NCBI RefSeq assembly: GCF_964204645.1 | Contig: NC_134031.1 | Location: 2,046,001-2,110,000 of the forward strand | Length of the DNA: 64,000 nucleotides | Origin: Tubulanus polymorphus | Taxonomy: Eukaryota > Animalia > Nemertea | Direction: 5' to 3' | Shown here: positions 7,546 through 40,424 of the stretch, piece after piece | Numbering within the stretch: the stretch's first letter is position 1 | Layout of the letters: each line of letters begins with the position of its first letter | Position numbers and translations under genes: made by a program | The notes under the pieces: generated by a model | Told to the model about the DNA's origin: nothing | Seen by the model: the letters and a program-made list of their open reading frames with translations, nothing else | Database searches by the model: none

Positions 7546-8582
7546 GATAGCCGGTGTTGCGGTTGCTCATTGCTAGCTTATTTGGTTGCATACCACGTGA
7601 TAAGTAGTTATTCCGCTATCCTAGTTTTTGTTTGTTTCGATAATTCAACTCGCTCCACAGTTTATCAGAGGGCTGTGTATTTGCGCAGTCGAATATTTAA
7701 CAGAAAATTGTAAAACAATGTAGAAAAAATCCTGTTTCGAACCAAGTACCGGGTGCACTTCGTGTGGAGTGCGATTTGCATATCGCTTGTATATGGTAAT
7801 TATGACACATATGTTTTTGATTGCAAATCAAATAATATTTCGGTATTTACACAAGAAACGACGCCAGTCGATAGAAGACCTGAGTTAGACGAGAGCTGGG
7901 TAAATTCTGTAAAACCTGAACACATGATATACAACGTATTGGTTGCCATAGACAAGCGACTATCTATGTCGTTCCGAAACAGATATATCGGCCATTTTTA
8001 AAAGTTAAAGAGTGTGACGTCTAGACTCAATTCTACGAGACATTTTCGCAACTAAGAGAGTAGTGACGTCAAGACTCAATTCTTTCCGCCACTTTCAAAC
8101 TGTTATGTAAATTAAAACGTCAACTTTCCTATATTTTTTCCTCCATATTGTGATTTTTTTCTCAACCACATATGCAGTGCAATTCTCAACTCTTATGGAG
8201 TGCGATGTAAATTTTCTGATGAATTTTACGTCAAATAAACATAAACTTATATACAAATACCTAATGGAATATATTAACAAAGATGAATGATGAAAATTCT
8301 GAATTATAACCCCGTCTAATGAACGAAATTCGACTTGATTTGTTCCGAGCAAACGAACAGAAAATTCTTGTCGATAAACTTTCAATTGTAGCAATTACAT
8401 CTCCATTTCATTCGCGCGCGAAAAGGAAAAAAGTAGAACATCGTATCATCAAAGCGATAAGAAATCGTTCCTGCTACTGATGTTCGATTGTTGACTGTTT
8501 TCGATGTCGTCAAGGATTTAATCGCTTGATCGCAGTTTGAATGTTTTTTTCACAGTTGAGCAGGCTCGATTGTCACCGAACG

Positions 8583-9150
8583 CGAGATAGATACATCTCA
8601 GTAGAGAGTGAGACAGATAGATAGATAGAGAGTAGAGGATTGGGAGAGGAAGTGAGGCGAGGGTAGTGAGTAAAAGAGGGACGAAAAAAAAGAACCGAAA
8701 ACCGAGAACGTGTGGGAGAGAGTGGCGGCGAGGAGAGGTAGACAGGTGACTTAAGAGTGGGGATAAGGCGAGGGAAGAAAGTGATGAAGAAAAAAGATTG
8801 AATGCCTCGGAAGATGGGGGAGAAAAGAGAGGGAGGACGTGACAGATGGCGAGGTGAAGGGAGGGACCCCGAGCAAAATGAAGAGTATCGAAGAGGATGT
8901 ATTGGAGAGGGCGTATGGGGAAAGGGAGCAACGAGGGAGCTGTGAAGGGGAGAGGGCGTCGGGTATAGGAGCGATGAGGGAGCTGAGGAGCGACGAAGAG
9001 GGATGAGTATGTCATAGGGGAGACTAGGGAGTTAGGGAGCAACGTGCGAGGGAGAGGGAGCGACAGATAAAGAATGATGTACGCGAGAGGAGGGAGTTTA
9101 GAGAGCAGGAGGAAGCGGGAGAAGTGACACTGAGAGATATGAAGAGACAA
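8583..9150. repeat. Long degenerate polypurine (A/G-rich) low-complexity tract
   Basis: About 570 bp strongly purine-biased on the + strand. Confidence 0.85.
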
Positions 9151-12100
9151 TATGACGATGCACGAACGGTAAATATTTCGATTGCGGGTTTTTTGCGAAA
9201 TGTCACAAACACCGCACGCACACCATGCATACAATTATACACTACATAGACGCGTAGAGGCGCCGAACTGTTACACGGTATAGAGACTCGTATAGAGGCG
9301 CCGAACACTTTAAACATCGAAATTTAGTCGGTAATGAAGTATTCTACCAATATTTGTAGACTCTTCAAAAACGACGGAACGACAAACAGAAATGTCGCCG
9401 ACTATTTTCAACGCGATGATTGAAAAAGCAACTATCGCCATCAACGCCACGGTTACTTACTCAATTACTCAAACACACGTAAATAGTCTATCTATAACAT
9501 GTATTCATGTATGCGAGAGTGATGGAATGAATGCCTAGAAAACCCGATAGTCAGATACTAGCCGAACGTTTATGTAAATAATGTTCTTAAATTCTTAGTC
9601 GTTTCATATACATGGCTTGTACTTGTGGTGGTTTTAGAGTTAATTCGCCTATAAACACTGCATTTAGCAAATCTTTGTTACCCCATTAGTGCTGTTAGGA
9701 GGAACACGTCAGGATTTTTGCAGTCAAGGGCTCAACTTTGACCCTCGATCCAATTCGATCTCTCCGGATCCAGCACTTGGTGCTGGAGTCACGTCAATTA
9801 AATAACACGTATCATTCGTCCAACAGCTCCTGAGCTCTTTGGATCCAGTAGTTGAAAGTTTGAAATTTGATTAGAGTTGGACGTAATGTTTCTCGACGTT
9901 ACTGAGATAGCGCACTGTAGATGTGTCTGCTAAACTTCAACCAGTCCTGGCAGTGGTTCTCCGTCGCTCTACGATCCAAGTGTAACCCCAATGTGGTACA
10001 TCAGACACTAAGGTTCTTTTGGTGTTAGCTAAACGTGCCATGCAACGAACAATCGACCAACCAAACAGGCCGAATCGATCGCGGCCGCTAACTCGTGTTA
10101 GGGCGATTTTGGGTTACTGTGTTCGGCGGCAGTCTGCGCGAGCGCGAACCCTCGGGACTTCATGTTTAATACTTTATTACTTGAGCGATTATTGCGTCTC
10201 TAGAGTAACGAGTAACGAGCCAGCGACCGACAACAGCAAAACGAGTAATTATTGCAAATAACATTCCACTAAACCTCACTAACACAATCCAGTTGCCAAC
10301 ACCGTCATTTTGATGCTTAGTTATTCGAGCGCTTAGCACTATATCACACTCCTGTTTGTCCGCGTCAGAAAAAAACCCGCACAAACTCAAAAACCATTTT
10401 CAGCCGGATGCGCGCATCAATCGAAAAACACGTTTCAAATGGAAAAAGATAAACAGTCACATCGTATTGTGTGTTTTGGTGATAACGAACAATCCCATAA
10501 TTGATGATAGGTTGATTCTAACTGATTATTGTCGACGTATTCATTTACCGTATCTGTGATGATGATGATGAGATTCAGATTAATCTCGAAAATGTTAGAA
10601 TTATAAATGTAAGATATCATTAATTGCGGTATCGTTTATTATACTCAACGCGCAGAGAATAAATCAGTCTATCCGTCGCAAAAGTGATGTTTTTTTTTTG
10701 TTTCAGCTCTCAGGCCTGGGCAACAGCAAAACGCGTATAAATAAACCATTTTACAGTTGCTCGCCGCCATTTTGTCAGGGTAATTATGTCCCATATTGTT
10801 CGGTCATTTTTTCTTCCTTTTTAAAAACTCATGCGTGTTTTATCATATTATCAATTTGTACATAGATGGATTTTTACATTTCTAGCAACATTTAAACCAA
10901 CCGTATGAATCTCTAGTTTTCCAATATGCAAAAATTATTTTTCAAAATGTGTCGTTTGTGCACTCCGCCTGCGTAAGGCGTCAGGCTTTTCATTTTGTTC
11001 GTGTAAATACTTCTAATGAAAAAAATCCAAAAACTAATTTTCAGAAAGTGAACATCGAAATGAAGATTATTTAGATCGGTATCGATCGAGGACCAAACTG
11101 AATTATGAAATAGGTGCATGTGGGCCGAGTTTTACAGTAGTGACTGCAAAGTCGAAAATTGGTCATAAACCATAAGGCAGTGGTCTTAACTTCGTAGATT
11201 GACCATACAACTATAAGATAGTCTTAGGCGGATCTTAAATCTAAGTTGCTGCTGAATATGACGACCGTGATCTTGTAATTGATTCTGGGACCGGTCCGTT
11301 GCAAACTGCATAGTTTATATAGATTTAACTTCGTCGGATGAAAATTATTTCATTTCATAACACAGCACACATTGTAATCCGTAACACCGAGCTGTATACC
11401 GCGGTCCCTAGAGAACTCCGATATTACACTGAATTGTAATGAGTTCAGAATGAATGTTCAATCGGTATAGATATTCCGAATGGTTTTTACACGGTTTAAT
11501 TAGCGCTATGAAATATACGCTCATTCATATTCATTCGGCGATCAAAATACTGTATACAATGTATAGGTGATTTAATTATTTATTGGTTAACAGATGGTTA
11601 AGATGAAGCCCGTGTCTTTTTTCTATGATATTTTGTGTGTACGACTAACCGTTTTGAACGCTGTAGTCGATGCTATAGTTTAAAATCAATTCGGTATGCG
11701 CGAAATATACCTAGATTATGTAGGCATTCCTATAACGGCTGATTCGGGCCGAATGAAAAAATCAAATGTCGCATTCTCATGTAACGTCGACTCGATGTAA
11801 ACAGATTTGCCAACTTTGACTTAGATCGTAAAATGAGAAGCTTTGTTCATTGAATAAGAAAGGCCAACTTTGAACTTACAATAGTTTCAAAATGGATCTT
11901 CATTCATTGTGATTGTTTTTATATAGCCCTGTTGCTATTTTATGTTATGTAACCAGTTCGCCATTATAAGTACAATCAGTGAATTACTCAAAACAATATT
12001 TCCCAGTTCACTGCAGCTTTGTATGATTCTAGATTTGTCTAGAGAAGGGATATATATCTTTGTAAACCCGGAAACGTTTGACGGATTATGAAATACATCA

Positions 12101-16900: not shown

Positions 16901-18519
16901 GGTTCTCTTATCATAGAATTTGGCAAAAGCTAATAGACAAAAACGCGTTTTGTAATTAACGGATAAAGCTTGCCCGCGTTCACTCTTGTGTTGTTTGATT
17001 GCTGTCAAAATTTAACAGTTTGCTGTGTGCACGAATTACCACTCTGTGTAAAAAAGAAGACAGGCACAATTTGTTTTCTAATATCGCAACCGCTACTTAA
17101 CGTTTCGCATGTCAGCCTAATATGCCAGCGATCAATCCAATTACGTCTATTAGGGGAAACTAGATTACTTACTCGCTGGTAATTATGAGTGTATTATTTC
17201 CTCGCGGTTCATACGCACAAAAATTACCGCTAATACGTCCGCGTATATAAGATATATATGATCTTTAGGCAATTTGCATGGCTATCACGGACTCGCGACC
17301 GGCTACATATTCCGGTCCGACGATGCGTGAGCGTCCGACCTAACATACGTCCGTTCCCAGCGGAATGATGGGATTGTCCGGTTAAGACGAGTACCTAATG
17401 TCGCGTGTTGCAGTATTTTTGAGGATTGTCTTCCACGCGCGCGTTGCTACTAGTAATTTGTCGGCGTTCATAATTGAGTACGTACGATTATTTTTGTGAA
17501 CGACGGGCGCCGAGTTACGATGTTACTAGACCGTTTAACTATTTAGTAAAGCCTCGGTGAATATTGTTTAACATTGCGGATAATTTCCGCTTCCAGACAA
17601 AATGATCGACGTGCGATGAGATGAAAGCACGCCCTGGCAAACGGGGATGAATAAAAAAAAAATTTTCATTCAGACGATTAATTTCTTCTTACGATTTCGA
17701 ATCGGATGAAATTTGAATAAATTCGCTAACAGTCGTATCTCAGAAATTTGATATTTTTGGATATGACATTTCAAATTCGGTAGTTTCGGTGTTTGGTAGC
17801 TCAATATTGTCATATATATTTCAACTATATGTTCGGCCAAAATGAAAAAGCATGACTGAAATCATAATCCAGTTCCACAGTTGCGAGTTAAGATTTGAAC
17901 TAATTTTAACTCAGAGTTAATTCTTACTCATGACTGTGGAACTGGATCCACAAGCTGTAAGTATCTGTAGAATACACCAGATAGTGAAAAATAAAACCAC
18001 CCGTTTCTCTCTACAGAACATAAACCCATTGCAATAAGCTCAAATGTTTACCAAATAAGCACTGTTGTTGCACGTTTGCTAATTTAAGCGGTTTGCCCGC
18101 GGATCACTAGTCAACATCTGTTTCATTGAAACAGATTTAGCACCCATAACGCGTGGTGACAAAGGCTAGGGTCCTAAACTCTGTTCGACAGATGTGGGTC
18201 GGCATTTCGGTTTTAATTACTTGAATATTCATTCATTTGAAAATCTACTCTGAACTCAGTTCCTGGCAGAATTTTGAATTTCGGATCGAATTCTAATTTC
18301 AAATCGTAGATAATGAACTAATGTTAAAGTCGAAATAATAGACGGGCACCAGAGAGTACGAAAAGTCATCTGGAAATGAATTTCAGTTCAACAGAGATTC
18401 TGTATGGACTGATTTTCAAATGTATATTCAAGTCGAATTGAACAGAAAACAATGTGGAACTGGAATTTTATCGATCATATCGGTTGAAGGAAAAATACTT
18501 GAAATAAATGTGAACTTAC

Positions 18520-19474
18520 GGTGGTATTTTATCCATACTGTACTTGTTAGATTGACGACTCCGATGACGAAAGCGACGAAACCACAAATTATCCCGAAAA
18601 TCCGGAGTCGCACGAAGTTTTTATGTAGCCAGTATTGATATATAATCCGGTACTGGGCTTCCGTGATTTTTACTTTCTTTTTCGGTGGTTCTTGGTGCTT
18701 TTTCTTTTTCTTCGACTTGGCCGGGGGCCTGTGAGCGACCTCGTCATCGTCGTCCGATTCGTCGAGACCGTGCGTATACTGGAACGGTTTACACTCCTTT
18801 CGCGCCTTTTTGATCGGTGTCGGAACGCGGTTCTTCTCGGCGTCCTTCTCTTTCTGCTCCATGGCCTCTAAACGGCGCCGGAACGAAGCCCTCCGCTGCT
18901 GCGACCACTGCACCCATTGAGACGCAGTCCGCACACCGAGAAACAGACTCGACCGAACTGACGATCTCGCCGAGTCCTGCCTGTCGCCTAGTTCTCCCGG
19001 TGACGGAGAACGGCTACCCCGACGCTGGTACTTATCCCATTCAGGATCTAATTCCATTCGTTTCGCTGGCTTATCCAACTGTGTTACCGAATTACGTTGC
19101 GCGAAAAGATCATCGAAATTTGGCTGGTTATTGGAACGCTCCTCCTCATCGGCGGCATACGCAGCGTGTACAGTTGCATCGGCAGCATCACTTTTGTATC
19201 GTTCAACCGAGTCGCTTCGCTCGATGCTCGGTCGACCGTTCGACTGTCTGGGGCTGCTATCTACACCGCTAGTGCCGGGCCGAGGCTCGTCGTAGTCGAA
19301 CGAAGACACGCCTGAAGGCGGCAGAGTTCCGATGCCGCTGCTTTCCCCGCTGCTCTGGTGCAACAACTGAAGCTCTTTCGGTCCGGGACGCAGTCGTTCG
19401 GGTGCCGGCACGATCTCGTTTTGTCGATCCCGCAGTGAAGGCGTCCTGCCGCGATCCATATCGTTATCGCCCGC
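18520..19474 (-). CDS. Large coding exon of a claudin/PMP22-like (tetraspan) membrane protein: long disordered cytoplasmic N-terminus + TM1
   Basis: Lies within ORF 18428-19480. Acceptor TCTTTTGCAG|GCG (phase 0), donor CAC C|GTAAGT (phase 1). An S/R/E/K-rich region is followed by LRIFGIICGFVAFVIGVVNLTSTVWIKYH, i.e. a TM followed by the S/T-x-x-W typical of claudin-superfamily TM1. The family call rests on this motif only; downstream exons were not found in the window. Confidence 0.8.
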
Positions 19475-19906
19475 CTGCAAAAGATTACATATCGTTCATA
19501 TTTATATCGAGTTTATTTAAGCAATCAAAAACCCGACGCGTCTCCAGTTCTCTGCCAATCTATTTCACTGGAGCCGTCGGCGCAAACTGCAAACCGTTAT
19601 TAATCACTATAAAATAATACTCTCGATTATTTGAATAATTCAACGGTTACGAACATTAACGCTCTATTATCTATTGTTTCAGCGCTTTTGGAAGCCGCGG
19701 TTCACTGCAGCGAGCCGCGCTCTTTCCATACACAGCGAAAAACGCCGCATGCAACAGATGCATGTAATATATGTAAAACCGGCGTCTCGCTCAGCGCGTA
19801 CGCATTTCAAGGGTATCAATCGAAATCCAAACCGTACACGTCACATTACGATTCATTTGAATGAGGGAATGTAAAAAAATCATGTTTCGTATCGGAGACA
19901 AAAACA

Positions 19907-30225: not shown

Positions 30226-30320
30226 TCACACGTCTTCATCCACATTTTGTTCGGGTAGAGACTCTCCCGCTGCATCCAGAGCTTCACCGCTTTCCGTGTG
30301 GTTGAAAAGTGATTTGTACG
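30226..30320 (-). CDS. NIT-GC paralog A putative terminal exon 8 (acidic tail)
   Basis: Strong acceptor CTCTTTTCTTTGCAG. The phase-1 join gives [31 protein letters not shown]. Confidence 0.7.
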
Positions 30321-33300
30321 CTGCAAAGAAAAGAGCGTGACTATAATCTTTGCATAAATCTAATTTTTCAAAGTCGGTCCCGAATGGTTGGAAATCGTCG
30401 TATAGGAGCCTCCCCAGGCAGTGATCGCGATGCCAGACACCCACAATCAGCAACCGATATTGTTCTGCCTATGCCCGGTATACAAATAGCCTAGTCTTCT
30501 GGGCCCAGAAACACAGTCGTGACCTCAGTGAAAAAGTGGTCTAAATCATGAGGCCGGTTGTTAGATTAGCTCTAGTTGGTAAAAGAATGGTCTTCAATCT
30601 AATTCACGAATGTACAGCTGGACCCTGAATAGCAAGATTGCAAGTAAATTCATATTCTACCCGAAATTAAGCCTCGGTTCGAACAGACGCAGCGATATAA
30701 ACAGGAGTTAGCGAATTGAACAGCCGCGTTTAGTTCTTAGTGAACCGTCTCGGCACCGTGCCGGTCGCGTGGGTTATTACGTATGATACCAACAGAGCGA
30801 TAGAGGTAGCAGTGAATCTTTTCCATACTTACCCGGTTCAGGTGTTGGATCGTTCGAGCGGTGGTAACCTCCAGCCGCCTCAGCCACACAGCCGGGCATA
30901 CACGCCAACGACTCTACAAAACCTTCTTTATCCGTCAACCAGTACGTTTTAAGCATCCCCTTACCCTAACGAACGATAAAGAACCTTACGAGGATAAGAT
31001 ATGGAGATTTTCTCACGTAATGTCGTCAAAAAGTCGGAAGATTCTGGCCTACCTTGAGTTCCATTTCGCCTCGAAATTCAAACTTGAATACCGGATCCAG
31101 AGCCAGGCCACCGTAGGTCACGTGACTGCAATGGATCCGACCGGCTGGATTGAAAAAAAGTTTACAAATACAGAGAGGTCCAGTGATAAGGTTAGTAGCA
31201 AACATTGCCTAGAGATCGGTGGGACGCACGAAAAACACCTATAATGAAGTATGCCTTTTACTTGCATCCAAAGTGGAAAATGAAGCCCCGATATCTGTTG
31301 TTCTTAAGATCTGTAACAAAATGATTTAAAAATAATTTTCACATGACTTTGTACTTACGTTGGCCGGAGGCTTCCATACGCGAGGCCGTATTCACCGTGT
31401 CTCCGAACAGACAGTATCGCGGCATCTTTGAACCGACCACACCGGCAACCAGAGCACCTACAAACAGTCAGCGAAAACGTAATTCGATCAGTTAATTTCA
31501 TTAGCGATCAGCGAGAGACGAACGAACGGAAAAATTCGCGGCGGATTCTATATTTTTGTTGTCAATACGCGGTGAAGGTTATTTGATTATTTCAGCTCAA
31601 GGCGATGTCTTTAAATGCTAAGGACGACGTTCTGTGGGCATTCTGTAATCACAAATACCACCCTGGACCCAGTTCTACAGTTGTGAGTTATGATTTGACT
31701 CTGGGTTAAATCATTGAGAATGAATTGATTTTAACTCAGAGTTAACCCTAAGTCACGACTGTAGAAATGGGTCCTAGACGTTATATGCATCGGATATCCG
31801 ACCAAAACCCGCAGAATCAGGTATACTGGCACATCCTCAAGTTCGGGGCCACATACTATAAAAGATCTATCTTGATCTGATTTGATTTATTTGACGATTA
31901 TCAAATTGAAACCCATACCTGTGTGTATTCCGGATCGAAGCTGCATCTTTGTACCGATCATGTGCGGGATTTCCACGTGTGACACGTGATGCAGTAAATC
32001 TAGAGCCATCGATGCTATTTCTGTCAGATGTTTCCTTGCGTTACGTTTCGGCACGCCTGTAAGAATCAAGGAGACGAGTGTATGACCACAATAACAATAT
32101 TCCTGAATATAACCGGATATAGTTGATATGTTAAATGAACAACTAATAGCTCAAAGAATACTGTATTCCTGAAAATGACTATAAGAATATAATTGAAACG
32201 TTGAACTACTAGCTCAAGGAATACAGTATACCTGAAGATGACAATCAGAGTCGAAATGTTGAATGAACTACACTAGCTCAAGAAATACGGTATTCCAGAA
32301 GATGACACTCAGGATATAGTCGATATGTTGAATGAACTACACTAGCTCAAGAAATACGGTATTCCAGAAGATGACACTCAGGATATAGTCGAAATGTTGA
32401 ATGAACTACACTAGCTCAAGGAATACAGTATTCCTGAAGATGACTATTAGGATATAGTCGAAAAGGAATACAGTATTCCTGAAGATGACTATTAGAATAT
32501 AGTTGAAACGTTGAACTACACTAGCTCAAGGAATACAGTATTCCTAAAGAAGACTACAGTAAGGTATTACAGTCGAAAAGATGAATAAACTTCAAGCTCA
32601 CGGAATCTTTTCAGACTCGTCGGACATGTCGAAAAAGCACAAGGCCGCTATATCTACGTGTTCCAACATTAACGCTACATGTTCCGCTACAGACTGACCT
32701 GATACGATCATATACGCGTCGCCGATTGTTTCTACTTTGTATACGTCATAAATACCGATCCGAGCGTCGAAACACATGTACAATCCGTTCAGCATCTGAA
32801 TCACCTGAAACATTGACAACGACGACGTTAGTTAGATCGAAATCGCCTTGGACTGTCTTCAATCCAAGCTATTATTGTGTAATGACCTGAGATGATGTTA
32901 TAACAAATACCTGTATAGGCGTACAGTTCGCTGATATCTTCGTGAAGCCGACGATATCGGAGAAATAGACGGTCGCGTCGTTGTAGGCTTCAGGTATGAC
33001 GTGTCGACCCTCTTTCAGTTCTTCGGCGACGATTTTCGGCAACATTTGAAACAGCATCGAATTAGTGCGGTGTCGCTCCTGATTGAAAACCTTCGTCTGG
33101 TCGGATAATGTATTCGCGTAGCGCTGTATGTCCGACATGATGGCTTTAACGAACGTGATCACCAACGGGCAGATAACGATAACCAGGATAAACACGCTTA
33201 AACTAACCGTCAAGTTTTTGACGTCGCGTTTCAACGAATTGTTCAGTTTAACTAGAATCACGTTAGCCACGTGACGCTGCACCTCATTCAATATATCGAT

Positions 33301-35138
33301 ATAGATAGTCATATTGTCGAACCAGTACGTGCTCATTTGCCAAGACGGCTGGTGATTGGTCAGATTGTTTCGGCTGATTTCGTTGCGCATGTTTGAAATG
33401 TGATAGGTGAAGTTGTTCGTCGTGATGTACTTCTTTTTTTCGCCGTCGAAAATACTTTGAATTTCGGGTATGAACTTCTTGGCGTTTTGCCAGTTACCGG
33501 AGCCGACGTTGTGCTTCTCTAAATACCACAGATAATGGCTGTCTATTTCGAACGACCCGCGCGAGTAGAAAACGCCCCCTAGCGTCCTTTCGATACCCAT
33601 ATCTTCTTTACTCATAACTAACAGCTGATAGGCGACCAGCGACCGCCAGACCTCGCCGTCTTTCGATTTTTGTATGGACATGTACATCCAATCGATGAAG
33701 ATCTTTATCGCGTTCGAATAGAACAGAATTTCGCGATAGGCGTCCGTAGTATCAGGCTCCAGGTAGGCGCGGTGGTTGCGGATGTACTGCAGGAAATCGT
33801 CGCGCGTGTTAAACTGCGCTAATCCGACGGATTTATCTTCGCTTTTCGGCCATTGCGTCAGACTTTCGAACGCCGAGTCGGTGTCCGGGTAGCGTTCACG
33901 TAGAAACATACGCGTTTCGGCTCCCAGTGTGCTCAGATACAGCGCAGTCATGTCCCGTTCTCTCTGTAGGTTGTGGATGACGACCGCGGTCTCCATGCTG
34001 AATTTGATCGTATCGCGTACGATCGTTTTCGCGTCGTTGTCTTTAGAAATCGTCGACAAGTCGATGACGCACATGACGCAAAGCGCCATGATCGGTATCA
34101 ATGTGAGGATCATCATTTTGGTCATCTGAATTTGTTTACCTGGCGATGACGAAACGCTGACATTCATTTTTACAGGATTTAGGGAGTTTGTAACAAGGTT
34201 GAAACTACTAGCATTTCAATTGGCACGTTTTTAGTTAAGAACTTTATCAAATAAACCAACGTTTTTGGTCTTATACATAAATTATGGAACTGTAGAACCA
34301 GAGTCCAGTTCAATGCAGTATATAAAATATATTTCTAAATCCAAAACGGTATCCACCTTCATTGTGCAACTGGCATCAGGAGTTTATCTATAAACTCGAC
34401 ATAATATTTGGGAATTCATGTTGGCATGAAACATAAGCCTTTTAGAATGCAAAGAAAATGAGCTCCGAGTCGCTTGCACGGATTTAAGACCAGTGTAAGA
34501 GCGACCTAGTTCTATACTAAATCTAACAACGTAATAATCTTAACAATTGAGACTGAAACAAGGCCTTGAAGAATGAGAAATTGCGACATGTGATTTCGGC
34601 TACGCGGTTTTGGAATTCTATCCATGCATCAAAACATACAGAAAATACTTGTATTTATGGTATTTGATGGATTTCCATATAAATTAGCCAATTGTTTCAC
34701 TTCCCATCATTAATTACGTGAAATTATGTTCCGCTGTTGTGCGTAATGCATTGACTTGGCGAACGACCTATATCTGTGAAACTGTAGAACCCAGGGATGC
34801 AGCATAGGGCAACGTGTACCATGGCTTAGATTTAAGACCGGGATAAGACCATCTTAGTTCTATAGCAAATACAACAACTTTAGAACAGTTTTCCTTTGGA
34901 CTTAAGAAGTCGTCACGACTGCGCAAAAAGGGCCAGGGAGCCACAGACCACAACATACAGAAGTACCTGCTTTTGTGAGCGGGCTAACACCGCATATTCG
35001 AGTCTTATCTTCCGCGTCGTCAAGAGCATCGGTAAAACTATCATCTTGATTCGTTCGTTTCGTCCAGAAAACCAACTGTTTCTCATTGCTATCGAGACTA
35101 CCGTCGGTGTGAAAACTTTCAGCGTTAATCAGAGACAT
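30226..35138 (-). CDS. NIT-domain (nitrate/nitrite-sensing domain) two-TM guanylyl cyclase, paralog A (NIT-GC family); 8 coding exons, 687 aa
   Basis: Hand-spliced GT-AG exons 35138-34967, 34139-32911, 32804-32699, 32056-31919, 31457-31359, 31144-31053, 30965-30833, 30320-30226 total 2064 nt with all phases consistent. TM1 [20 protein letters not shown]; NIT-like motifs HNLQRERD and DMGIERTLG; TM2 [22 protein letters not shown]; helix [14 protein letters not shown]; cyclase motifs [42 protein letters not shown]. The last exon is less certain: unspliced read-through would stop at 30777. Confidence 0.93.
30833..30965 (-). CDS. NIT-GC paralog A exon 7; not in ORF track
   Basis: TTCGTTAG|GGT ... 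G|GTAAGT; [44 protein letters not shown]. Confidence 0.9.
31053..31144 (-). CDS. NIT-GC paralog A exon 6; not in ORF track
   Basis: TTTTCAATCCAG|CC ... AAG|GTAGGC; [31 protein letters not shown]; 92 nt, as in paralog B. Confidence 0.92.
31359..31457 (-). CDS. NIT-GC paralog A exon 5 ([16 protein letters not shown]); not in ORF track
   Basis: TTTGTAG|GT ... C|GTAAGT; [33 protein letters not shown]; 99 nt. Confidence 0.95.
31666..31773. mobile_element. MITE family B copy in a NIT-GC A intron
   Basis: GACCCAGTTCTACAGT ... ACTGTAGAAATGGGTC. Confidence 0.75.
31919..32056 (-). CDS. NIT-GC paralog A exon 4
   Basis: CTTACAG|GC ... ACAG|GTATGG; [10 protein letters not shown]...LRSGIHT; 138 nt, same size as the paralog B exon. 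Confidence 0.95.
32096..32597. repeat. Tandem array, about 69-bp unit x 7-8, related to the MITE D arm
   Basis: Unit CACTAGCTCAAGGAATACAGTATTCCTGAAGATGACTATTAGGATATAGTCGAAATGTTGAATGAACTA; near-identical units start at 32271 and 32340. Confidence 0.85.
32699..32804 (-). CDS. NIT-GC paralog A exon 3 (cyclase, [10 protein letters not shown])
   Basis: TTTCAG|GTG ... TCAG|GTCAGT; [35 protein letters not shown]. Confidence 0.95.
32911..34139 (-). CDS. NIT-GC paralog A exon 2 (TM1, NIT, TM2, coiled helix, cyclase start)
   Basis: Lies within ORF 32872-34167. Acceptor CGCCAG|GT, donor CAG|GTATTT. Confidence 0.95.
34967..35138 (-). CDS. NIT-GC paralog A coding exon 1 (MSLINAESF...[10 protein letters not shown])
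   Basis: Acceptor TTTTGTCAG at 35149-35150 lies just 5' of the ATG. Phase-1 donor G|GTACTT. The exon end aligns with the paralog B exon 1 end ([11 protein letters not shown]). Confidence 0.85.
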
Positions 35139-36241
35139 TGTGATGATCCTGACAAAATAGAGACAAAATATTATACGAGTTCGCAACCTGATCGTACAAA
35201 TACTAATCATAATGTTAATATTAATTATTTAGAAAGGAAACAAAAAATTATGTAAACTCAACCGCCGATCACACAACTATAGCTGTACTTCGATTTCAAA
35301 ATCAAAACCCCTGTTTCGCTCCCGGCAGGTGTGGTGGGTTTGTAAGGGACACTCAAATCAAAAAAATCAAACGAAATTTACCAACCAAATAAATAACAGG
35401 GTCAATCCCTATTTCAAGATAGAAAAAACATTTTAATGATTTATTTCATCATCAATTAAATCGAACAACACTACAAAATAAAGTACACGACAGAATTAGT
35501 AGATTGATGATAGCGACCCGAACAGAGCCATCAAGGCTGTACTAACTATCAGAGATAAAATCAACGATTATTATTATACTTAGATGAATTCGAATCAATC
35601 AGGAAATCGTAAAAATCAAAATCGTCGATTAATTAAACAGGACGCAAATCTTCTTCGAACAAAGGTTGAATAGACGACTAGCTGCAGGAAACCGGTGCTA
35701 TACTCGACTACTCAATCCCAGTACGCGATTTTATATCAGAATTCAATTTCGTCAAGTGAACTTACGTACGATTTACATCGGTGATATTCCTACTTGCATC
35801 AACACATCATACACGCATCACTGGAAAAATAACTCGAGTAATGACTGGTTAGTAATTCACTAATACGGGCTAGGAGAAAAAGTCAACTAAACCTATCAGT
35901 GCGCATGTCAGAAAATAACCAGATGCCGTAGACACCCTACCGGCTAACTAATTTTCATCTAATAATAATCATCTATACTTGGCGTGTTAATTAATCAACG
36001 ATGGGAACTATCTCGTGACTAAACGACGATCCCGCTGATATTTACGAAATCGTTTTTTCGCAAATTCGAAGTCGATCGATGATTACGAGGAGTGACTTAC
36101 GCGCGATCGAAGCGCCATGTTTTACTTTTTGCGAAGTATGGATATTTCGTTTACTCTTGCGCGTAAGCTCGGCTGCACCAGTGATATCTTTTATCGAGGA
36201 ACCTTTTTTTCGTTTCGAGGGAATCACGACTGCAGTCGAAA
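35139..36241. promoter_or_regulatory. Shared divergent (bidirectional) promoter/5'UTR region of the two NIT-GC genes
   Basis: Positional inference: 1103 bp between divergent ATGs. Contains the minus-strand acceptor at 35149-35150 and candidate minus-strand GTAAGT donors at 35765 and 36100. Confidence 0.55.
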
Positions 36242-36419
36242 ATGAAGTCGAAAGAAAAAAAAGTGGCCTCGATCTTGGCCGACGATGACACGACAATGTC
36301 TACCGATTCACAGGAAAGTTCCGGAGTCGCCCTCGATCAGTCGATTCGTAATACGCTCAATGAAACGGGAGACGCCGGGTGGATGGCTCTGTGTCGCGGG
36401 AATCCGCTGACACTTCGAG
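36242..36419 (+). CDS. NIT-GC paralog B coding exon 1
   Basis: ATG in AAAATGA context; ends [11 protein letters not shown]|GTAAAT in phase 1, in frame with the next exon. Confidence 0.88.
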
Positions 36420-39400
36420 GTAAATTTCGAATCTAATATTTTCAATGATTTCAACGATTCATTGAAGAAAGAATTATGATTGGTTACTAATGACGTCTTT
36501 TTAATTCTCAATGACTCGGACGATTCAGTAAAAAGTTTATAATGACAACCTTCTCATTATCATTGACTTCATCGATTCAGTAAAATTATGATAAGTAACA
36601 ATGACGATGAACTTTTCAATCTCAATGACTTCAGTGATTGAAATTATGATTCGTTTTCAAAAAATGGTACGACCTCAACGATGATTTTGTAGAAGCTGCC
36701 ACAATGAGAGACGGTTGTCAGACATTCTCTTACCAATTTTTTCCTTTTCAGGTAAAAGAGTTCAAATGGCGAAGATGATGATATTGACGTTGGTTCCGAT
36801 TTGCGCTTTGACGGTTATTTGTATCGTCGATTTGGCGACGATTTACGCCGAAAACCGCGGACAGTACGACATCCGTGATAACATCCGGTTCAGCACCGAG
36901 ATCGGAACCGTCGTACACTACCTGCAGAAAGAGCGGGACATGACGGCGCTTCATTTGAGCACGATGGGCGCCGAGACGCGAATCTTTCTCCGCGAGCGGT
37001 ATCCGGACACCGATAAGGCTTTAGACAAACTGTCTAAATGGCCTGAGAAGACTTCCGGTACTATTTCGCAGTTCGGAAGCGCTAAGGACTTTCAAACTTT
37101 TATCAAACGCCATCGCGATAAACTGGAACCGGGCGAGACGGACACCTTTGCCGAGATCAAGTTCTATTCGGACGCTATCAAGATCTTCATCGATTGGATC
37201 TACGCCTTCATACAGGAATCCAGCGACGGTGACCAGTGGCGCAACCTAGTGGCGTATCAGTTGCTAGTTCTATCGAAAGAAGACATGGGAGTTGAACGCA
37301 CGCTAGGGGGCGTATTCTACTCGAAGGGCTCGTTCGAGAAATACAGCGATTATTTGTGGTACATGTCCAAGCATAACACGGGTATCGGCCGTTTTAAAGC
37401 GGCTCAGCGATTCACTGAAACAGTGGCGGATTTCTTCAACGAAGAAATTCCCAAACACACGAAAAACTTTACCGAATCGATTCGACGAATGAGAATGGAC
37501 ATCAGCCGTAACAATATGACCGGCCGAGAACCGTCCTGGGAAATGAGCACTTTCTGGTTCGATAACATGACCATCTACATCGACATCATGTTTCAGGTAA
37601 TTTTTCCCCTTTCTAACGATTCATAAGTTTTAATTTGGTGTCAAAAGAGGGATGGGTGACAACTAATCGCGCTAGAGGTTTTAGTTTAAAAAATGTTAAA
37701 ATCTGTCCGATTAATGCGGGACCTGTTGGACCGCCTCAAAATGGCGCCTGGAAACTTCCCTATCACTTTGATAGCTTCAGAAGTTTCTTTTTGAACAATC
37801 AAAGCACGTTGTTGGTCTATGCTATGACTCTTGGTTCGTTCCCGCGTCAGAGACATAATTCCAAAATAGATCTTAAGCCATGCCTAAACCATCCGGAACC
37901 TGAATCTGCGACCACGAATGTGGTTCAAGTCCAATCATAGGCAGGTTTCGACTGGTCTCTGCCGATTCCGGAATACTCTAATGGTGGGTTCGTTTCAACC
38001 ACGCCTTGCCAATTACGGAATAGCTTAACCTGTAACCTGATAGAAGCGGCTGGTAGAGAGTTTGGAAACCGGAGTTACATCTTAAACCGGTGTAATCGAA
38101 TCGAAACCCGTTTAGATTAGTCAATTCTAAACCCCAACCAACGGCGACAAGCATCCAAATTCGTCTTCAACTTTACTCACACTCATTCGTATTGTAGGTG
38201 CAAGTTAAAATGGCCGATGTCATCCTACAATCGCTGGAGGTGTCTCTAACCCGCGATCTAAAAGAGATGAGCGTAAGCATCAGTCTGTTCGCCTTGGTGG
38301 CGCTCATCTGCCCGGCCGTGATCACATTCGTGCGAGCCATCATGAACGACACGCAGAAATACGCGCTGAATTTGGCCGATCAGACGAAAGCGTTGGCGAA
38401 AGAGCGCAGACGCACCGACTCGCTTCTCTACCAGATGATACCGAAAATGGTCGCCAAACAACTGAAGAAAGGCCAACACGTTAGCGCCGAATCGTACAAC
38501 GAATGCACGATATATTTTTCGGATATTGTGAGCTTCACGAAGATATCGGCGGATTGTTCCCCGATGCAGGTGATATCCATGTTGAATAGTTTGTACATGT
38601 GTTTCGATGATAGAATCGATTGTTATGACGTGTATAAAGTTGAAACTATCGGCGACGCTTACATGGTTGTCTCAGGTAAACATAGATAGCATGACGAGGC
38701 AATTCAATAGAAAATGTCTTGTTTTTCAGATAATCTAAAATCAGATAATTAGAATGAAAAAATGAAGTCCGGAAAGTTTCCTTGATGTAGTAGGGCCTTT
38801 TTTTTTTCAACGTTAGTTCAGTATTTCCGAAGATGACTATTAGAATATTGTCGAAACTTTGAATAAACTACAACACTAGCGCAAGGAAACTTTCTGAACC
38901 CATTTCTCATTCTTATTGTGGTATTTTATTTATATTATCGTTATGCAGCACAGATTTAGTGTTTTTCATCAGTGTTTTTTTCAAAGGCTAATAACAGCCC
39001 CCAATAAGGCTCCAATTGAAGCATATGTAATTTCAAACTTTTGCCCATTCATATACACAAACCAATCATACGTTTTAAGATGATATGATTATGATATGAC
39101 TAAGATCACACGTTGCTTCTTTTATGGAATTGCTCCGCTAGCTAAAATTGCCTTTAGAAATAATAACAGCATTCATTATTTCAGGTGTTCCGAAACGTAA
39201 TGGCAGACGTCACGTGACAGAGATCGGCACGATGGCGTTGGATCTGATGCATCATATCGGACATTTAGAGATTCCTCACCTTCCTGGTCACAGGATGCAA
39301 CTCAGAGCCGGTTTACATTCAGGTACGGTCGATGGTCGATATCCACCTGCAGGGTCACGAGATTCTTAAGCCGGGCGTAAGCCGGCCTTGCGACCGCTTG

Positions 39401-40424
39401 CGACTCACTGCGACGCGACTCACTGCGACCGCCAGCGACGATCGCGTCGCAACGACCAACCGACCTACGCTACCTTGCGACTGCCAGCGATGGGTTGCGA
39501 CTGCCAGCGACGCCAGTCACAATGAGTCGCACATGTTCTACTTTCTGCGACGCGACGCGACCGTCGCAACCGATCTACGCGCTCTTGCGACTGGGAGCAA
39601 CTAGTCGCACAGAGTCGCTGACAATCGCGTCGCAACCGACTTGCGTCCCCACTTGTGACGCAACGCGACGATCGCGTCGCGTCGCAAGGTCGACCTACGT
39701 CCGGCTTACATTTGCGTGTTCTATATATAAATGTGCTCATTTTTCAATCGAAGGCCCTTGTGTGGCGGGAGTTGTCGGATCGAAGATGCCCAGGTACTGT
39801 CTGTTCGGAGACACGGTGAACATGGCCTCCCGAATGGAGTCGCATGGCCTTCGTAAGTAAATAACTTGTATCTCGATTTCAAACATCAAATATCTTATAA
39901 GTTCCTGTTATCAAACAGCAGATTGCGTCGAGTTATCGCTCCGACTGCCCTGGAATTCACGTCATACTTTGGAGAGAGTTTATTGGGACCGCGAGATCCG
40001 AGGCAACCGTGCAGTCTACTCATTATAGAAATATACAAATATTGGCCCTATATCTATAGAGAATGCTCTTTATAATATTTCCAGCGTCTAAAGTGCACAT
40101 AAGCGAATCTACCAGAGATTTACTTTACTCCGAATCTGAATACACGATTTCTAATCGCGGCGAAGTTGAGATCAAGGTAATGTAGTTGTTGTCGGATAGA
40201 TGGCGCGAGCGGGGAACTCGAGATTGACTCGAGAAATTAGTCATCCAGTCGTTACTAGAAATGAAGATCGATCAGTGTTCGTTTGGTTGATTTTCATCGT
40301 CTTTTTCTTACAGGGAAAAGGCAAAATGAGGACGTATTTTTTGGAATCGAAGGCTAATCTTGAAGAGTTGTTGCCGTGTCACGGGGGCTGCGTGGTGCTT
40401 CCATTGGCTGAGATGTACTCGTAA
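36242..40424 (+). CDS. NIT-domain two-TM guanylyl cyclase, paralog B (NIT-GC family); 7 coding exons, 646 aa
   Basis: Hand-spliced GT-AG exons 36242-36419, 36752-37596, 38198-38675, 39185-39322, 39754-39852, 40085-40176, 40314-40424 total 1941 nt with consistent phases. TM1 [20 protein letters not shown]; HYLQKERD and DMGVERTLG; TM2 [20 protein letters not shown]; [14 protein letters not shown]; [42 protein letters not shown]. Colinear homology with paralog A. Confidence 0.95.
36752..37596 (+). CDS. NIT-GC paralog B exon 2 (TM1 + NIT)
   Basis: TTCCTTTTCAG|GT ... TTTCAG|GTAATT. Confidence 0.95.
38198..38675 (+). CDS. NIT-GC paralog B exon 3 (TM2, coiled helix, cyclase N-half)
   Basis: ATTGTAG|GTG ... 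TCAG|GTAAAC. Confidence 0.95.
39185..39322 (+). CDS. NIT-GC paralog B exon 4
   Basis: ATTTCAG|GT ... TCAG|GTACGG; [10 protein letters not shown]...LRAGLHS. Confidence 0.95.
39367..39708. mobile_element. GC-rich MITE with about 27-bp TIRs and internal TGCGAC/GTCGCA repeats, in NIT-GC B intron 4
   Basis: TAAGCCGGGCGTAAGCCGGCCTTGCGAC ... GTCGCAAGGTCGACCTACGTCCGGCTTA. Related terminal fragments at about 47036-47063 and 47131-47151. Confidence 0.75.
39754..39852 (+). CDS. NIT-GC paralog B exon 5
   Basis: TTTTTCAATCGAAG|GC ... C|GTAAGT; [33 protein letters not shown]. Confidence 0.95.
40085..40176 (+). CDS. NIT-GC paralog B exon 6; not in ORF track
   Basis: ATTTCCAG|CG ... AAG|GTAATG; [31 protein letters not shown]. 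Confidence 0.92.
40314..40424 (+). CDS. NIT-GC paralog B terminal exon 7
   Basis: TTTTTCTTACAG|GGA; [36 protein letters not shown]. Confidence 0.93.
   Translation, partial: GKGKMRTYFLESKANLEELLPCHGGCVVLPLAEMYS

Follow-up and report, generated by a model that had tools for sequence, protein, structure and literature searches.

We have found that the two divergently transcribed genes at the centre of this window (the whole stretch of 64,000 nucleotides of Tubulanus polymorphus DNA that was analysed) are, judged by their domains, modelled fold and phylogeny, members of the known animal family of NIT-domain receptor guanylyl cyclases, or NIT-GCs (Moroz 2020; Jokura et al.). They are probably two functional paralogues, derived from an old inverted duplication that took place locally in the Tubulanus lineage, and their head-to-head layout would then be the footprint of that duplication and not a selected module.

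Two complete NIT-GC genes

Gene A (LOC141908442, protein P0001) lies on the minus strand at 30226-35138 and encodes a NIT-domain receptor guanylyl cyclase of 687 aa in eight exons (35138-34967, 34139-32911, 32804-32699, 32056-31919, 31457-31359, 31144-31053, 30965-30833 and 30320-30226, the last with the stop). Its exon 2 (32911-34139; residues 58-467) encodes TM1, the entire NIT domain and TM2, and continues through the signalling helix into the cyclase. Gene B (LOC141908443, protein P0002), a second receptor of the same kind, lies on the plus strand at 36242-40424 and encodes 646 aa in seven exons (36242-36419, 36752-37596, 38198-38675, 39185-39322, 39754-39852, 40085-40176 and 40314-40424, the last with the stop), of which exon 2 (36752-37596) encodes TM1 together with the greater part of the NIT domain (Pfam NIT, E = 6.9e-23). 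According to the intron table, the end of this domain is interrupted by a repeat-rich, B-specific intron of 601 nt (37597-38197), and positions 37490-38089 show high depth in the DNA runs. When spliced at GT-AG introns, both models gave translations with 0 mismatches to the RefSeq proteins (P0001 for A, P0002 for B). Exon joining served this check alone, and the similarity searches were queried with single exons or with the database proteins. Coding differences seen in DNA contigs were synonymous in five cases out of six. The open frames, canonical splice sites, RefSeq-identical translations and mostly synonymous variants all indicate that A and B are functional genes. The first-pass annotation had described two complete divergent paralogues with start codons 1.1 kb apart, and this description stands, far beyond what chance could give: the gene models are entire, the proteins align collinearly over 610 residues with 59% identity, and the start codons at 35138 and 36242 are separated by 1,103 bp, a distance measured from ATG to ATG.

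Both proteins have the order short N-terminus, TM1, NIT, TM2, signalling helix and class III cyclase. Whole-protein searches matched Pfam NIT (PF08376) with E = 4.8e-23 and 83.2 bits for A and E = 3e-24 and 87.2 bits for B, the gathering score being 24.9 bits, and the open frame of gene A exon 2 alone matched it with E = 1.4e-23. Guanylate_cyc (PF00211) was matched with E = 1.5e-63 in A and E = 4.6e-68 in B. The HNOBA match in the two proteins corresponds to its C-terminal helix only, and Pfam searches of the whole proteins and of the exons gave no match to a kinase, ANF-receptor or H-NOX domain. Hydrophobic helices with Kyte-Doolittle peaks of 2.5-2.9 flank the NIT domain on both sides (residues 67-85 and 367-385 in A, 69-87 and 367-385 in B). 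Hydropathy and Pfam therefore bear out the architecture first proposed for the pair, namely TM1-NIT-TM2, a helix and a class III cyclase with neither a kinase-homology nor an H-NOX domain. Outside the pair, 14 of the longest open frames of the window contained no Pfam domain above threshold.

As a sequence search of solved structures with the NIT region returned no match, a fold search was needed. For B residues 88-365, AlphaFold gave an all-helical model (pLDDT 84, pTM 0.83), whose top Foldseek match is the bacterial regulator NasR (4AKK), with a TM score of 0.78 over 280 columns, a probability of 1.00 and E = 2.6e-6; the next match has E = 0.03 and no other was convincing. NasR is a soluble, RNA-binding bacterial antiterminator responding to nitrate/nitrite, while the NIT domain of A and B would be extracellular and drive a cyclase. 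The model is of B only, and A is 58% identical to B over the modelled region. The two Glu-Arg motifs of the NIT domain (B 120-121 and 241-242) do not vary among A, B and 24 relatives, and both cyclase domains carry the guanylyl-cyclase specificity residues, the Glu of KVETIGD and the Cys of RYCLFGD. In the tree, A and B fall with metazoan NIT-GCs, within a clade of Lineus and other lophotrochozoan members (support 100/99) whose sister group is formed by the deuterostome NIT-GCs. The earlier assignment of the pair to the NIT-GC family is thus confirmed by two domains above threshold in each protein, by a NasR-like fold model and by the phylogeny.

Metazoan NIT-GCs, including placozoan ones, have been described as having a NIT domain between two transmembrane segments, a C-terminal cyclase and conserved arginines where the two four-helix bundles meet (Moroz 2020; PMC7400543), and all of these features are present in A and B. 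That survey, in which the nitrate/nitrite hypothesis for NIT-GCs is put forward, names molluscs, annelids, arthropods, priapulids, echinoderms and hemichordates but not nemerteans, and does not address genomic arrangement. NIT-GC1 and NIT-GC2 of Platynereis dumerilii resemble A and B in domain content (NIT, membrane anchor, conserved guanylyl cyclase, no kinase-homology domain) and belong to the same metazoan family, although they come from another phylum. Gene arrangement and dimer composition are not discussed in the Platynereis work, the text of which does not contain the words "heterodimer", "homodimer" or "tandem" (bioRxiv 10.1101/2023.08.02.551600).

Catalytic sites and the NIT-GC repertoire

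Aligned with two ANP-receptor-like proteins, both A and B have the eight canonical residues (D, E, D, R, C, N, R and K), which make up a complete catalytic set, and complementary half-sites, with the metal Asp pair in one protein and the Asn/Arg pair in the other, are absent between them. As each keeps the full set, neither would need a partner, and we predict that each can form an active homodimer. The closest solved structure to the cyclase domain and dimerisation helix is that of GC-A, or ANP receptor 1 (PDB 9bcv and relatives, E = 7e-80), a homodimeric receptor guanylyl cyclase with the same complete catalytic set. GC-A nevertheless has an ANF-receptor ectodomain and a single TM in place of the TM1-NIT-TM2 of A and B, as well as a kinase-homology domain, which they lack.

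The T. polymorphus genome contains 12 NIT-GCs, four with complete sites, four alpha/C1-like and four beta/C2-like, so that eight of them have half-sites lacking either the Asn/Arg pair or the metal Asp, which look complementary. The alpha-like paralogues include LOC141908568, and the beta-like ones include those at C10:13.097 Mb and C4:2.617 Mb. The presence of these half-site paralogues suggests that heterodimers probably exist in the family, and it makes mixed A/B dimers plausible. Co-folding is to be expected of any two guanylyl-cyclase catalytic domains, and would not distinguish A/B heteromers from homomers. Soluble guanylyl cyclase alpha/beta is an obligate heterodimer whose subunit genes adjoin in vertebrates. 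It is like the A/B pair in consisting of two adjoining paralogous cyclase genes, but its half-sites are complementary and mutually dependent, whereas A and B have a full set each; a split like that of soluble guanylyl cyclase occurs in the other NIT-GC paralogues of this genome and not in this pair.

Origin of the divergent layout

Several observations point to an inverted duplication. The inverted DNA repeats in the region consist of the A and B exons only (72-79% identity), and five introns are common to both genes in position and phase. The mixture-model tree places the two proteins as sisters (support 82/91, path length 1.13). They were joined only under that model, as the plain LG+G4 tree did not resolve the nemertean clade; the sister relation has only moderate support. 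In both trees the branch to gene A exceeds that to gene B (0.59 and 0.37 with LG+G4, 0.67 and 0.47 with the mixture model).

Any promoter of A or B is presumably located between the start codons (35139-36241), an interval whose short length would suit a bidirectional promoter. Within it there is, 100 nt ahead of the start codon of gene A, a SINE- or MITE-like interspersed repeat spanning about 195 nt (35238-35430). This repeat had 2,269 candidates in a first look at the genome, with 40 scored copies 87-92% identical, and contig depth over it reaches about 74,000, against about 32 in the flanks. No Rfam family or tRNA was found in the interval, which has no similarity to other loci except through the repeat, and its CpG observed/expected ratio does not stand out against the genome-wide value near 1.4.

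The main alternative is the one favoured in the first-pass annotation, a co-regulated two-subunit module in which the interval acts as a bidirectional promoter and A and B are made in the same cells, giving A/B heterodimers or a mixture of homo- and heterodimers that would combine two NIT sensors. The divergent orientation and the short distance between the start codons are in its favour, as are the established fact that class III cyclases act as dimers and the probable occurrence of heterodimers among the half-site paralogues. Furthermore, a second head-to-head NIT-GC pair is present in the hemichordate Glandiceps, independent of A and B. However, both A and B are catalytically complete, a high-copy repeat has been inserted in the interval, and adjoining NIT-GC genes in the T. 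polymorphus genome are always of the same catalytic class and never complementary. Nor is the arrangement conserved. The two closest homologues in Lineus longissimus (P0003 and P0059) are about 160 kb apart, have unrelated neighbours upstream (GYF and hydrolase genes) and are not accompanied by a divergent NIT-GC gene within 10 kb; the partner in the Glandiceps pair is likewise absent in Ptychodera. When the open frames of both Lineus loci were compared with the whole window they matched NIT-GC exons only, with no synteny in the flanks. Across loci, the seven adjacent NIT-GC pairs (two divergent, three tandem and two convergent) have the orientations expected at random. These latter findings argue against the module, which we now consider unlikely. 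A more specific form of it, in which A and B would be driven together from the bidirectional promoter in the same sensory cells and form mixed dimers with a combined or graded response to nitrogen oxides, the arrangement having arisen independently of the Glandiceps pair, seems to us rather improbable; if true, it would be the first genomically hard-wired heteromeric NIT receptor. With an inverted duplication as the preferred origin, regulatory DNA common to A and B is possible but not required.

Proposed function and significance

Two independent receptors would work as follows. A cytoplasmic N-terminus of about 65 residues would lead to TM1, followed by an extracellular NIT domain predicted to be a double four-helix bundle with both Glu-Arg motifs, whose arginines are thought to bind the ligand. 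TM2 and the signalling helix would connect it to a class III cyclase of predicted guanylyl-cyclase specificity, in which the metal-binding and transition-state residues are all present, and A and B would each homodimerise in the manner of GC-A and other receptor guanylyl cyclases. The NIT domain would bind a nitrogen oxide species (nitrate, nitrite or an NO derivative), and this signal would be relayed through TM2 and the helix to increase cGMP production, as proposed by analogy with Platynereis NIT-GC1, which produces cGMP upon addition of an NO donor in a manner that requires the NIT domain (bioRxiv 10.1101/2023.08.02.551600).

The receptors could also be independent and yet respond not to nitrate, nitrite or NO but to, for example, another small anion or a sea-water cue. 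No direct ligand has so far been demonstrated for an animal NIT domain, the Platynereis study did not separate NO, nitrite and nitrate as the ligand of NIT-GC1, so that NO could not be told apart from its oxidation products (Jokura et al.; bioRxiv 10.1101/2023.08.02.551600), and the sequence shares only 15-17% identity with NasR. Against this, the motifs with the two presumed ligand-binding arginines are invariant, the fold matches NasR uniquely, and the response of Platynereis NIT-GC1 to the NO donor depends on its NIT domain, so we regard a different ligand as quite improbable.

Finally, decay of one copy (a young pseudogene or a mis-annotated model, with a single receptor made) is very improbable: the longer branch of gene A, its N-terminal exon with no detectable match in Lineus and the lack of contigs over 32690-38680 in the single candidate RNA run (X4, beside three DNA-like runs), where neither gene was seen and which is not evidence of silence, are outweighed by frames that are open in all exons, canonical splice sites, common intron phases, every catalytic and NIT motif residue and mostly synonymous coding variants, and at 41% residue divergence a dead copy would carry stops.

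NIT-GCs have recently been recognised as a possible route for the sensing of NO or its oxidation products in marine invertebrates, and Platynereis NIT-GC1 is, to our knowledge, the sole member assayed so far. The pair described here opens no new question, since its divergent layout looks like duplication history, but it adds two well-defined and apparently self-sufficient nemertean NIT-GCs that are suited to heterologous assays. The census of 12 NIT-GCs is the more useful by-product of this work, and A and B may serve in its study as natural homodimer controls.

Gene models and domain architecture

Genes A (LOC141908442, minus strand) and B (LOC141908443, plus strand) are located on C7 (window 2046001-2110000) of the 268 Mb genome of Tubulanus polymorphus and are transcribed divergently, with start codons that point apart and lie 1,103 bp from each other. 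In a protein search against RefSeq, the ORF at 32872-34167 on the minus strand showed 99% identity to LOC141908442 (P0001, 687 aa) and 59% to LOC141908443 (P0002, 646 aa). RefSeq already lists the products of both genes, annotated as uncharacterised. Mapping to the window gave models with canonical GT-AG introns in which A comprises exons 35138-34967, 34139-32911, 32804-32699, 32056-31919, 31457-31359, 31144-31053, 30965-30833 and 30320-30226 (minus strand) and B comprises exons 36242-36419, 36752-37596, 38198-38675, 39185-39322, 39754-39852, 40085-40176 and 40314-40424 (plus strand). Their translations reproduce P0001 and P0002 with 0 mismatches, and the coordinates and description of two divergent genes in the first-pass annotation were therefore correct. 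Exons were joined with a local script that checked equality with these two proteins, and searches were run with single exons or database proteins.

According to Pfam, the first large exon encodes a NIT domain (E = 1.4e-23 in A and 6.9e-23 in B, exon by exon) and the exons downstream of it match Guanylate_cyc. Both domains were also found in the whole proteins (NIT, 83 bits in A and 87 bits in B against a cut-off of 24.9; Guanylate_cyc, E = 1.5e-63 and 4.6e-68), in which no kinase, ANF-receptor or H-NOX domain was detected and the HNOBA match was limited to its last ~40 positions, which correspond to the signalling/dimerisation helix. Strong hydrophobic segments lie on either side of NIT (67-85 and 367-385 in A; 69-87 and 367-385 in B), and the proposed TM1-NIT-TM2-helix-class III cyclase arrangement lacking kinase-homology and H-NOX domains is borne out. 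The NIT region had no match among solved structures by sequence search. Residues 88-365 of B, modelled with an alignment of 26 relatives, are all-helical (pLDDT 84, pTM 0.83), and the NIT domain of NasR (4AKK; TM 0.78, probability 1.00) is the sole structure that they match convincingly. The cytoplasmic part most resembles ANP receptor 1 among solved structures (E = 7e-80). Two Glu-Arg motifs of the NIT domain, whose arginines are the likely ligand site (Moroz et al. 2020, PMC7400543), are invariant across A, B and 24 relatives. Judged by sequence, A and B have all the features that define membership of the NIT-domain receptor guanylyl cyclase (NIT-GC) family, already described by Moroz et al. 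(2020) and Jokura et al.

Layout and history of the pair

The first-pass annotation read A and B as a co-regulated module of two subunits sharing the interval between them. Conservation of the head-to-head layout, the sole testable prediction of a conserved bidirectional module, was not seen for A/B. The closest homologues in Lineus longissimus, P0003 and P0059, are on one chromosome with ~160 kb between them; upstream of P0003 is a GYF-domain gene and downstream of it a distant, convergent NIT-GC, P0059 is preceded by a hydrolase gene in the same orientation, and no flanking gene common to the two Lineus loci and the window was found. The distant NIT-GC, tail-to-tail with the P0003 gene (L001, OU343003.1, 19950-24796), shares 36-39% identity with A, B and P0003; the gene caller gives just a 242-aa cyclase fragment there, and this model appears truncated. 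In the hemichordate Glandiceps talaboti (OZ203274.1, 8.04-8.08 Mb) we have found an independent head-to-head pair of sister NIT-GCs, accompanied by a third, tandem copy, and the Ptychodera orthologue has no partner in the 10 kb upstream. All the adjacent NIT-GC pairs seen (2 divergent, 3 tandem, 2 convergent) conform to the 1:2:1 expected from random orientation.

At 35238-35430, 100 nt before the A start codon, the interval contains one copy of a ~195-nt interspersed repeat, for which a first look across the genome gave at least 2,269 candidates (87-92% identity in the 40 copies scored) and which has enormous contig depth in DNA runs. This repeat is SINE- or MITE-like, with A-rich ends in loose reads. 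The other ~810 nt are unique sequence; neither an Rfam family nor a tRNA was found in the interval, and its CpG content is undistinctive against a genome-wide observed/expected ratio of ~1.4. Further high-copy repeats, with DNA-run contig depths of hundreds to thousands, occupy 34690-34889 (intron 1 of A) and 36490-36689 and 37490-38089 (introns 1 and 2 of B), and most of the intron that interrupts the NIT domain in B alone is repeat. Elsewhere in the window, the minus-strand ORFs 18428-19480 (350 aa) and 8518-9234 (238 aa) gave no Pfam hit that passed the threshold.

Aligned collinearly over 610 residues, A and B share 59% identity, and five introns agree between them in position and phase, with shared exon lengths of 138, 99 and 92 nt; two introns are private to A and one to B. 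Inverted DNA repeats around the pair are confined to the exons (72-79% identity). The nemertean clade was not resolved in an LG+G4 tree, and under a site-heterogeneous model A and B grouped as sisters, moderately supported (82/91) and separated by a path of 1.13 changes per site. The simplest reading is that an inverted duplication, by now old, took place once the Lineus lineage had split off. Intron 3 of A also holds 7-8 tandem units of ~69 nt (32122-32584), and one related unit is present in the corresponding intron of B (38811-38867). The unit is on the same genomic strand in both introns, and hence reversed relative to the divergent genes. It probably represents a dispersed element and not something left over from the duplication.

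Both copies look to be under selection: their reading frames are intact, all motifs are retained and, of six coding differences in DNA contigs, five are synonymous. One candidate RNA run contained nothing from A or B, which is no evidence of silence.

Catalytic sites and dimer type

In class III cyclases, two Asp bind the metals and the partner chain gives the base-specifying pair and the transition-state Asn and Arg, a two-group site known from adenylyl cyclase C1/C2 and soluble GC alpha/beta. Glu and Cys at the specificity positions mark GTP specificity. The alignment showed D, E, D, R, C, N, R and K at the eight canonical positions in both A and B, a pattern that, on sequence grounds, is that of homodimeric receptor GCs and not of the half-site, heterodimer-forming kind. 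The complementary half-sites predicted for obligate heterodimers are absent from A and B. With a complete catalytic set in each gene and a layout that is not conserved in Lineus, we consider a co-regulated two-subunit module quite unlikely. In the Glandiceps head-to-head pair, P0030 has a complete set; in P0034 neither metal Asp is retained and the specificity Cys and transition-state Arg are also lost, which makes it a likely pseudo-cyclase.

What is observed, then, is two intact TM1-NIT-TM2-helix-cyclase genes with a NasR-like fold, conserved putative ligand arginines and complete cyclase sites. A and B would each homodimerise through the helix and catalytic domains, and binding of a nitrogen oxide species to the extracellular NIT domain may shift TM2 and the helix and increase cGMP synthesis, by analogy with Platynereis NIT-GC1. 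The response of that protein to an NO donor requires its NIT domain, and the species bound may be NO, nitrite or nitrate (Jokura et al., bioRxiv 10.1101/2023.08.02.551600).

The genome contains 12 NIT-GC loci, which fall into three catalytic classes of four genes each. The complete set is present in A, B, LOC141915366 (C1:29.35 Mb) and a gene at C2:23.80 Mb. An alpha/C1-like class keeps the Asp pair and has lost Asn (to Ser or Thr) and Arg (to Lys or Ile); it comprises LOC141908568 (C7:6.33 Mb), two tandem genes at C2:28.81 Mb and one at C2:0.84 Mb. The beta/C2-like class (C10:13.10 Mb, C4:2.62 Mb and a convergent pair at C2:1.01 Mb) keeps Asn and Arg and has lost the first Asp, replaced by Gly in all four genes, with the second Asp also changed to Ser in two. 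Neighbouring NIT-GC genes in this genome are of the same class in every case, which is predicted by local duplication, not by subunit pairing.

The A/B finding is real but ordinary, an additional nemertean pair in a known family. The three paralogue classes suggest obligate heterodimeric NIT-GCs, which are not discussed in Jokura et al. (bioRxiv 10.1101/2023.08.02.551600) or Moroz et al. (PMC7400543). Because half-site classes exist among the 12 paralogues of this genome, heterodimers probably exist in the NIT-GC family.
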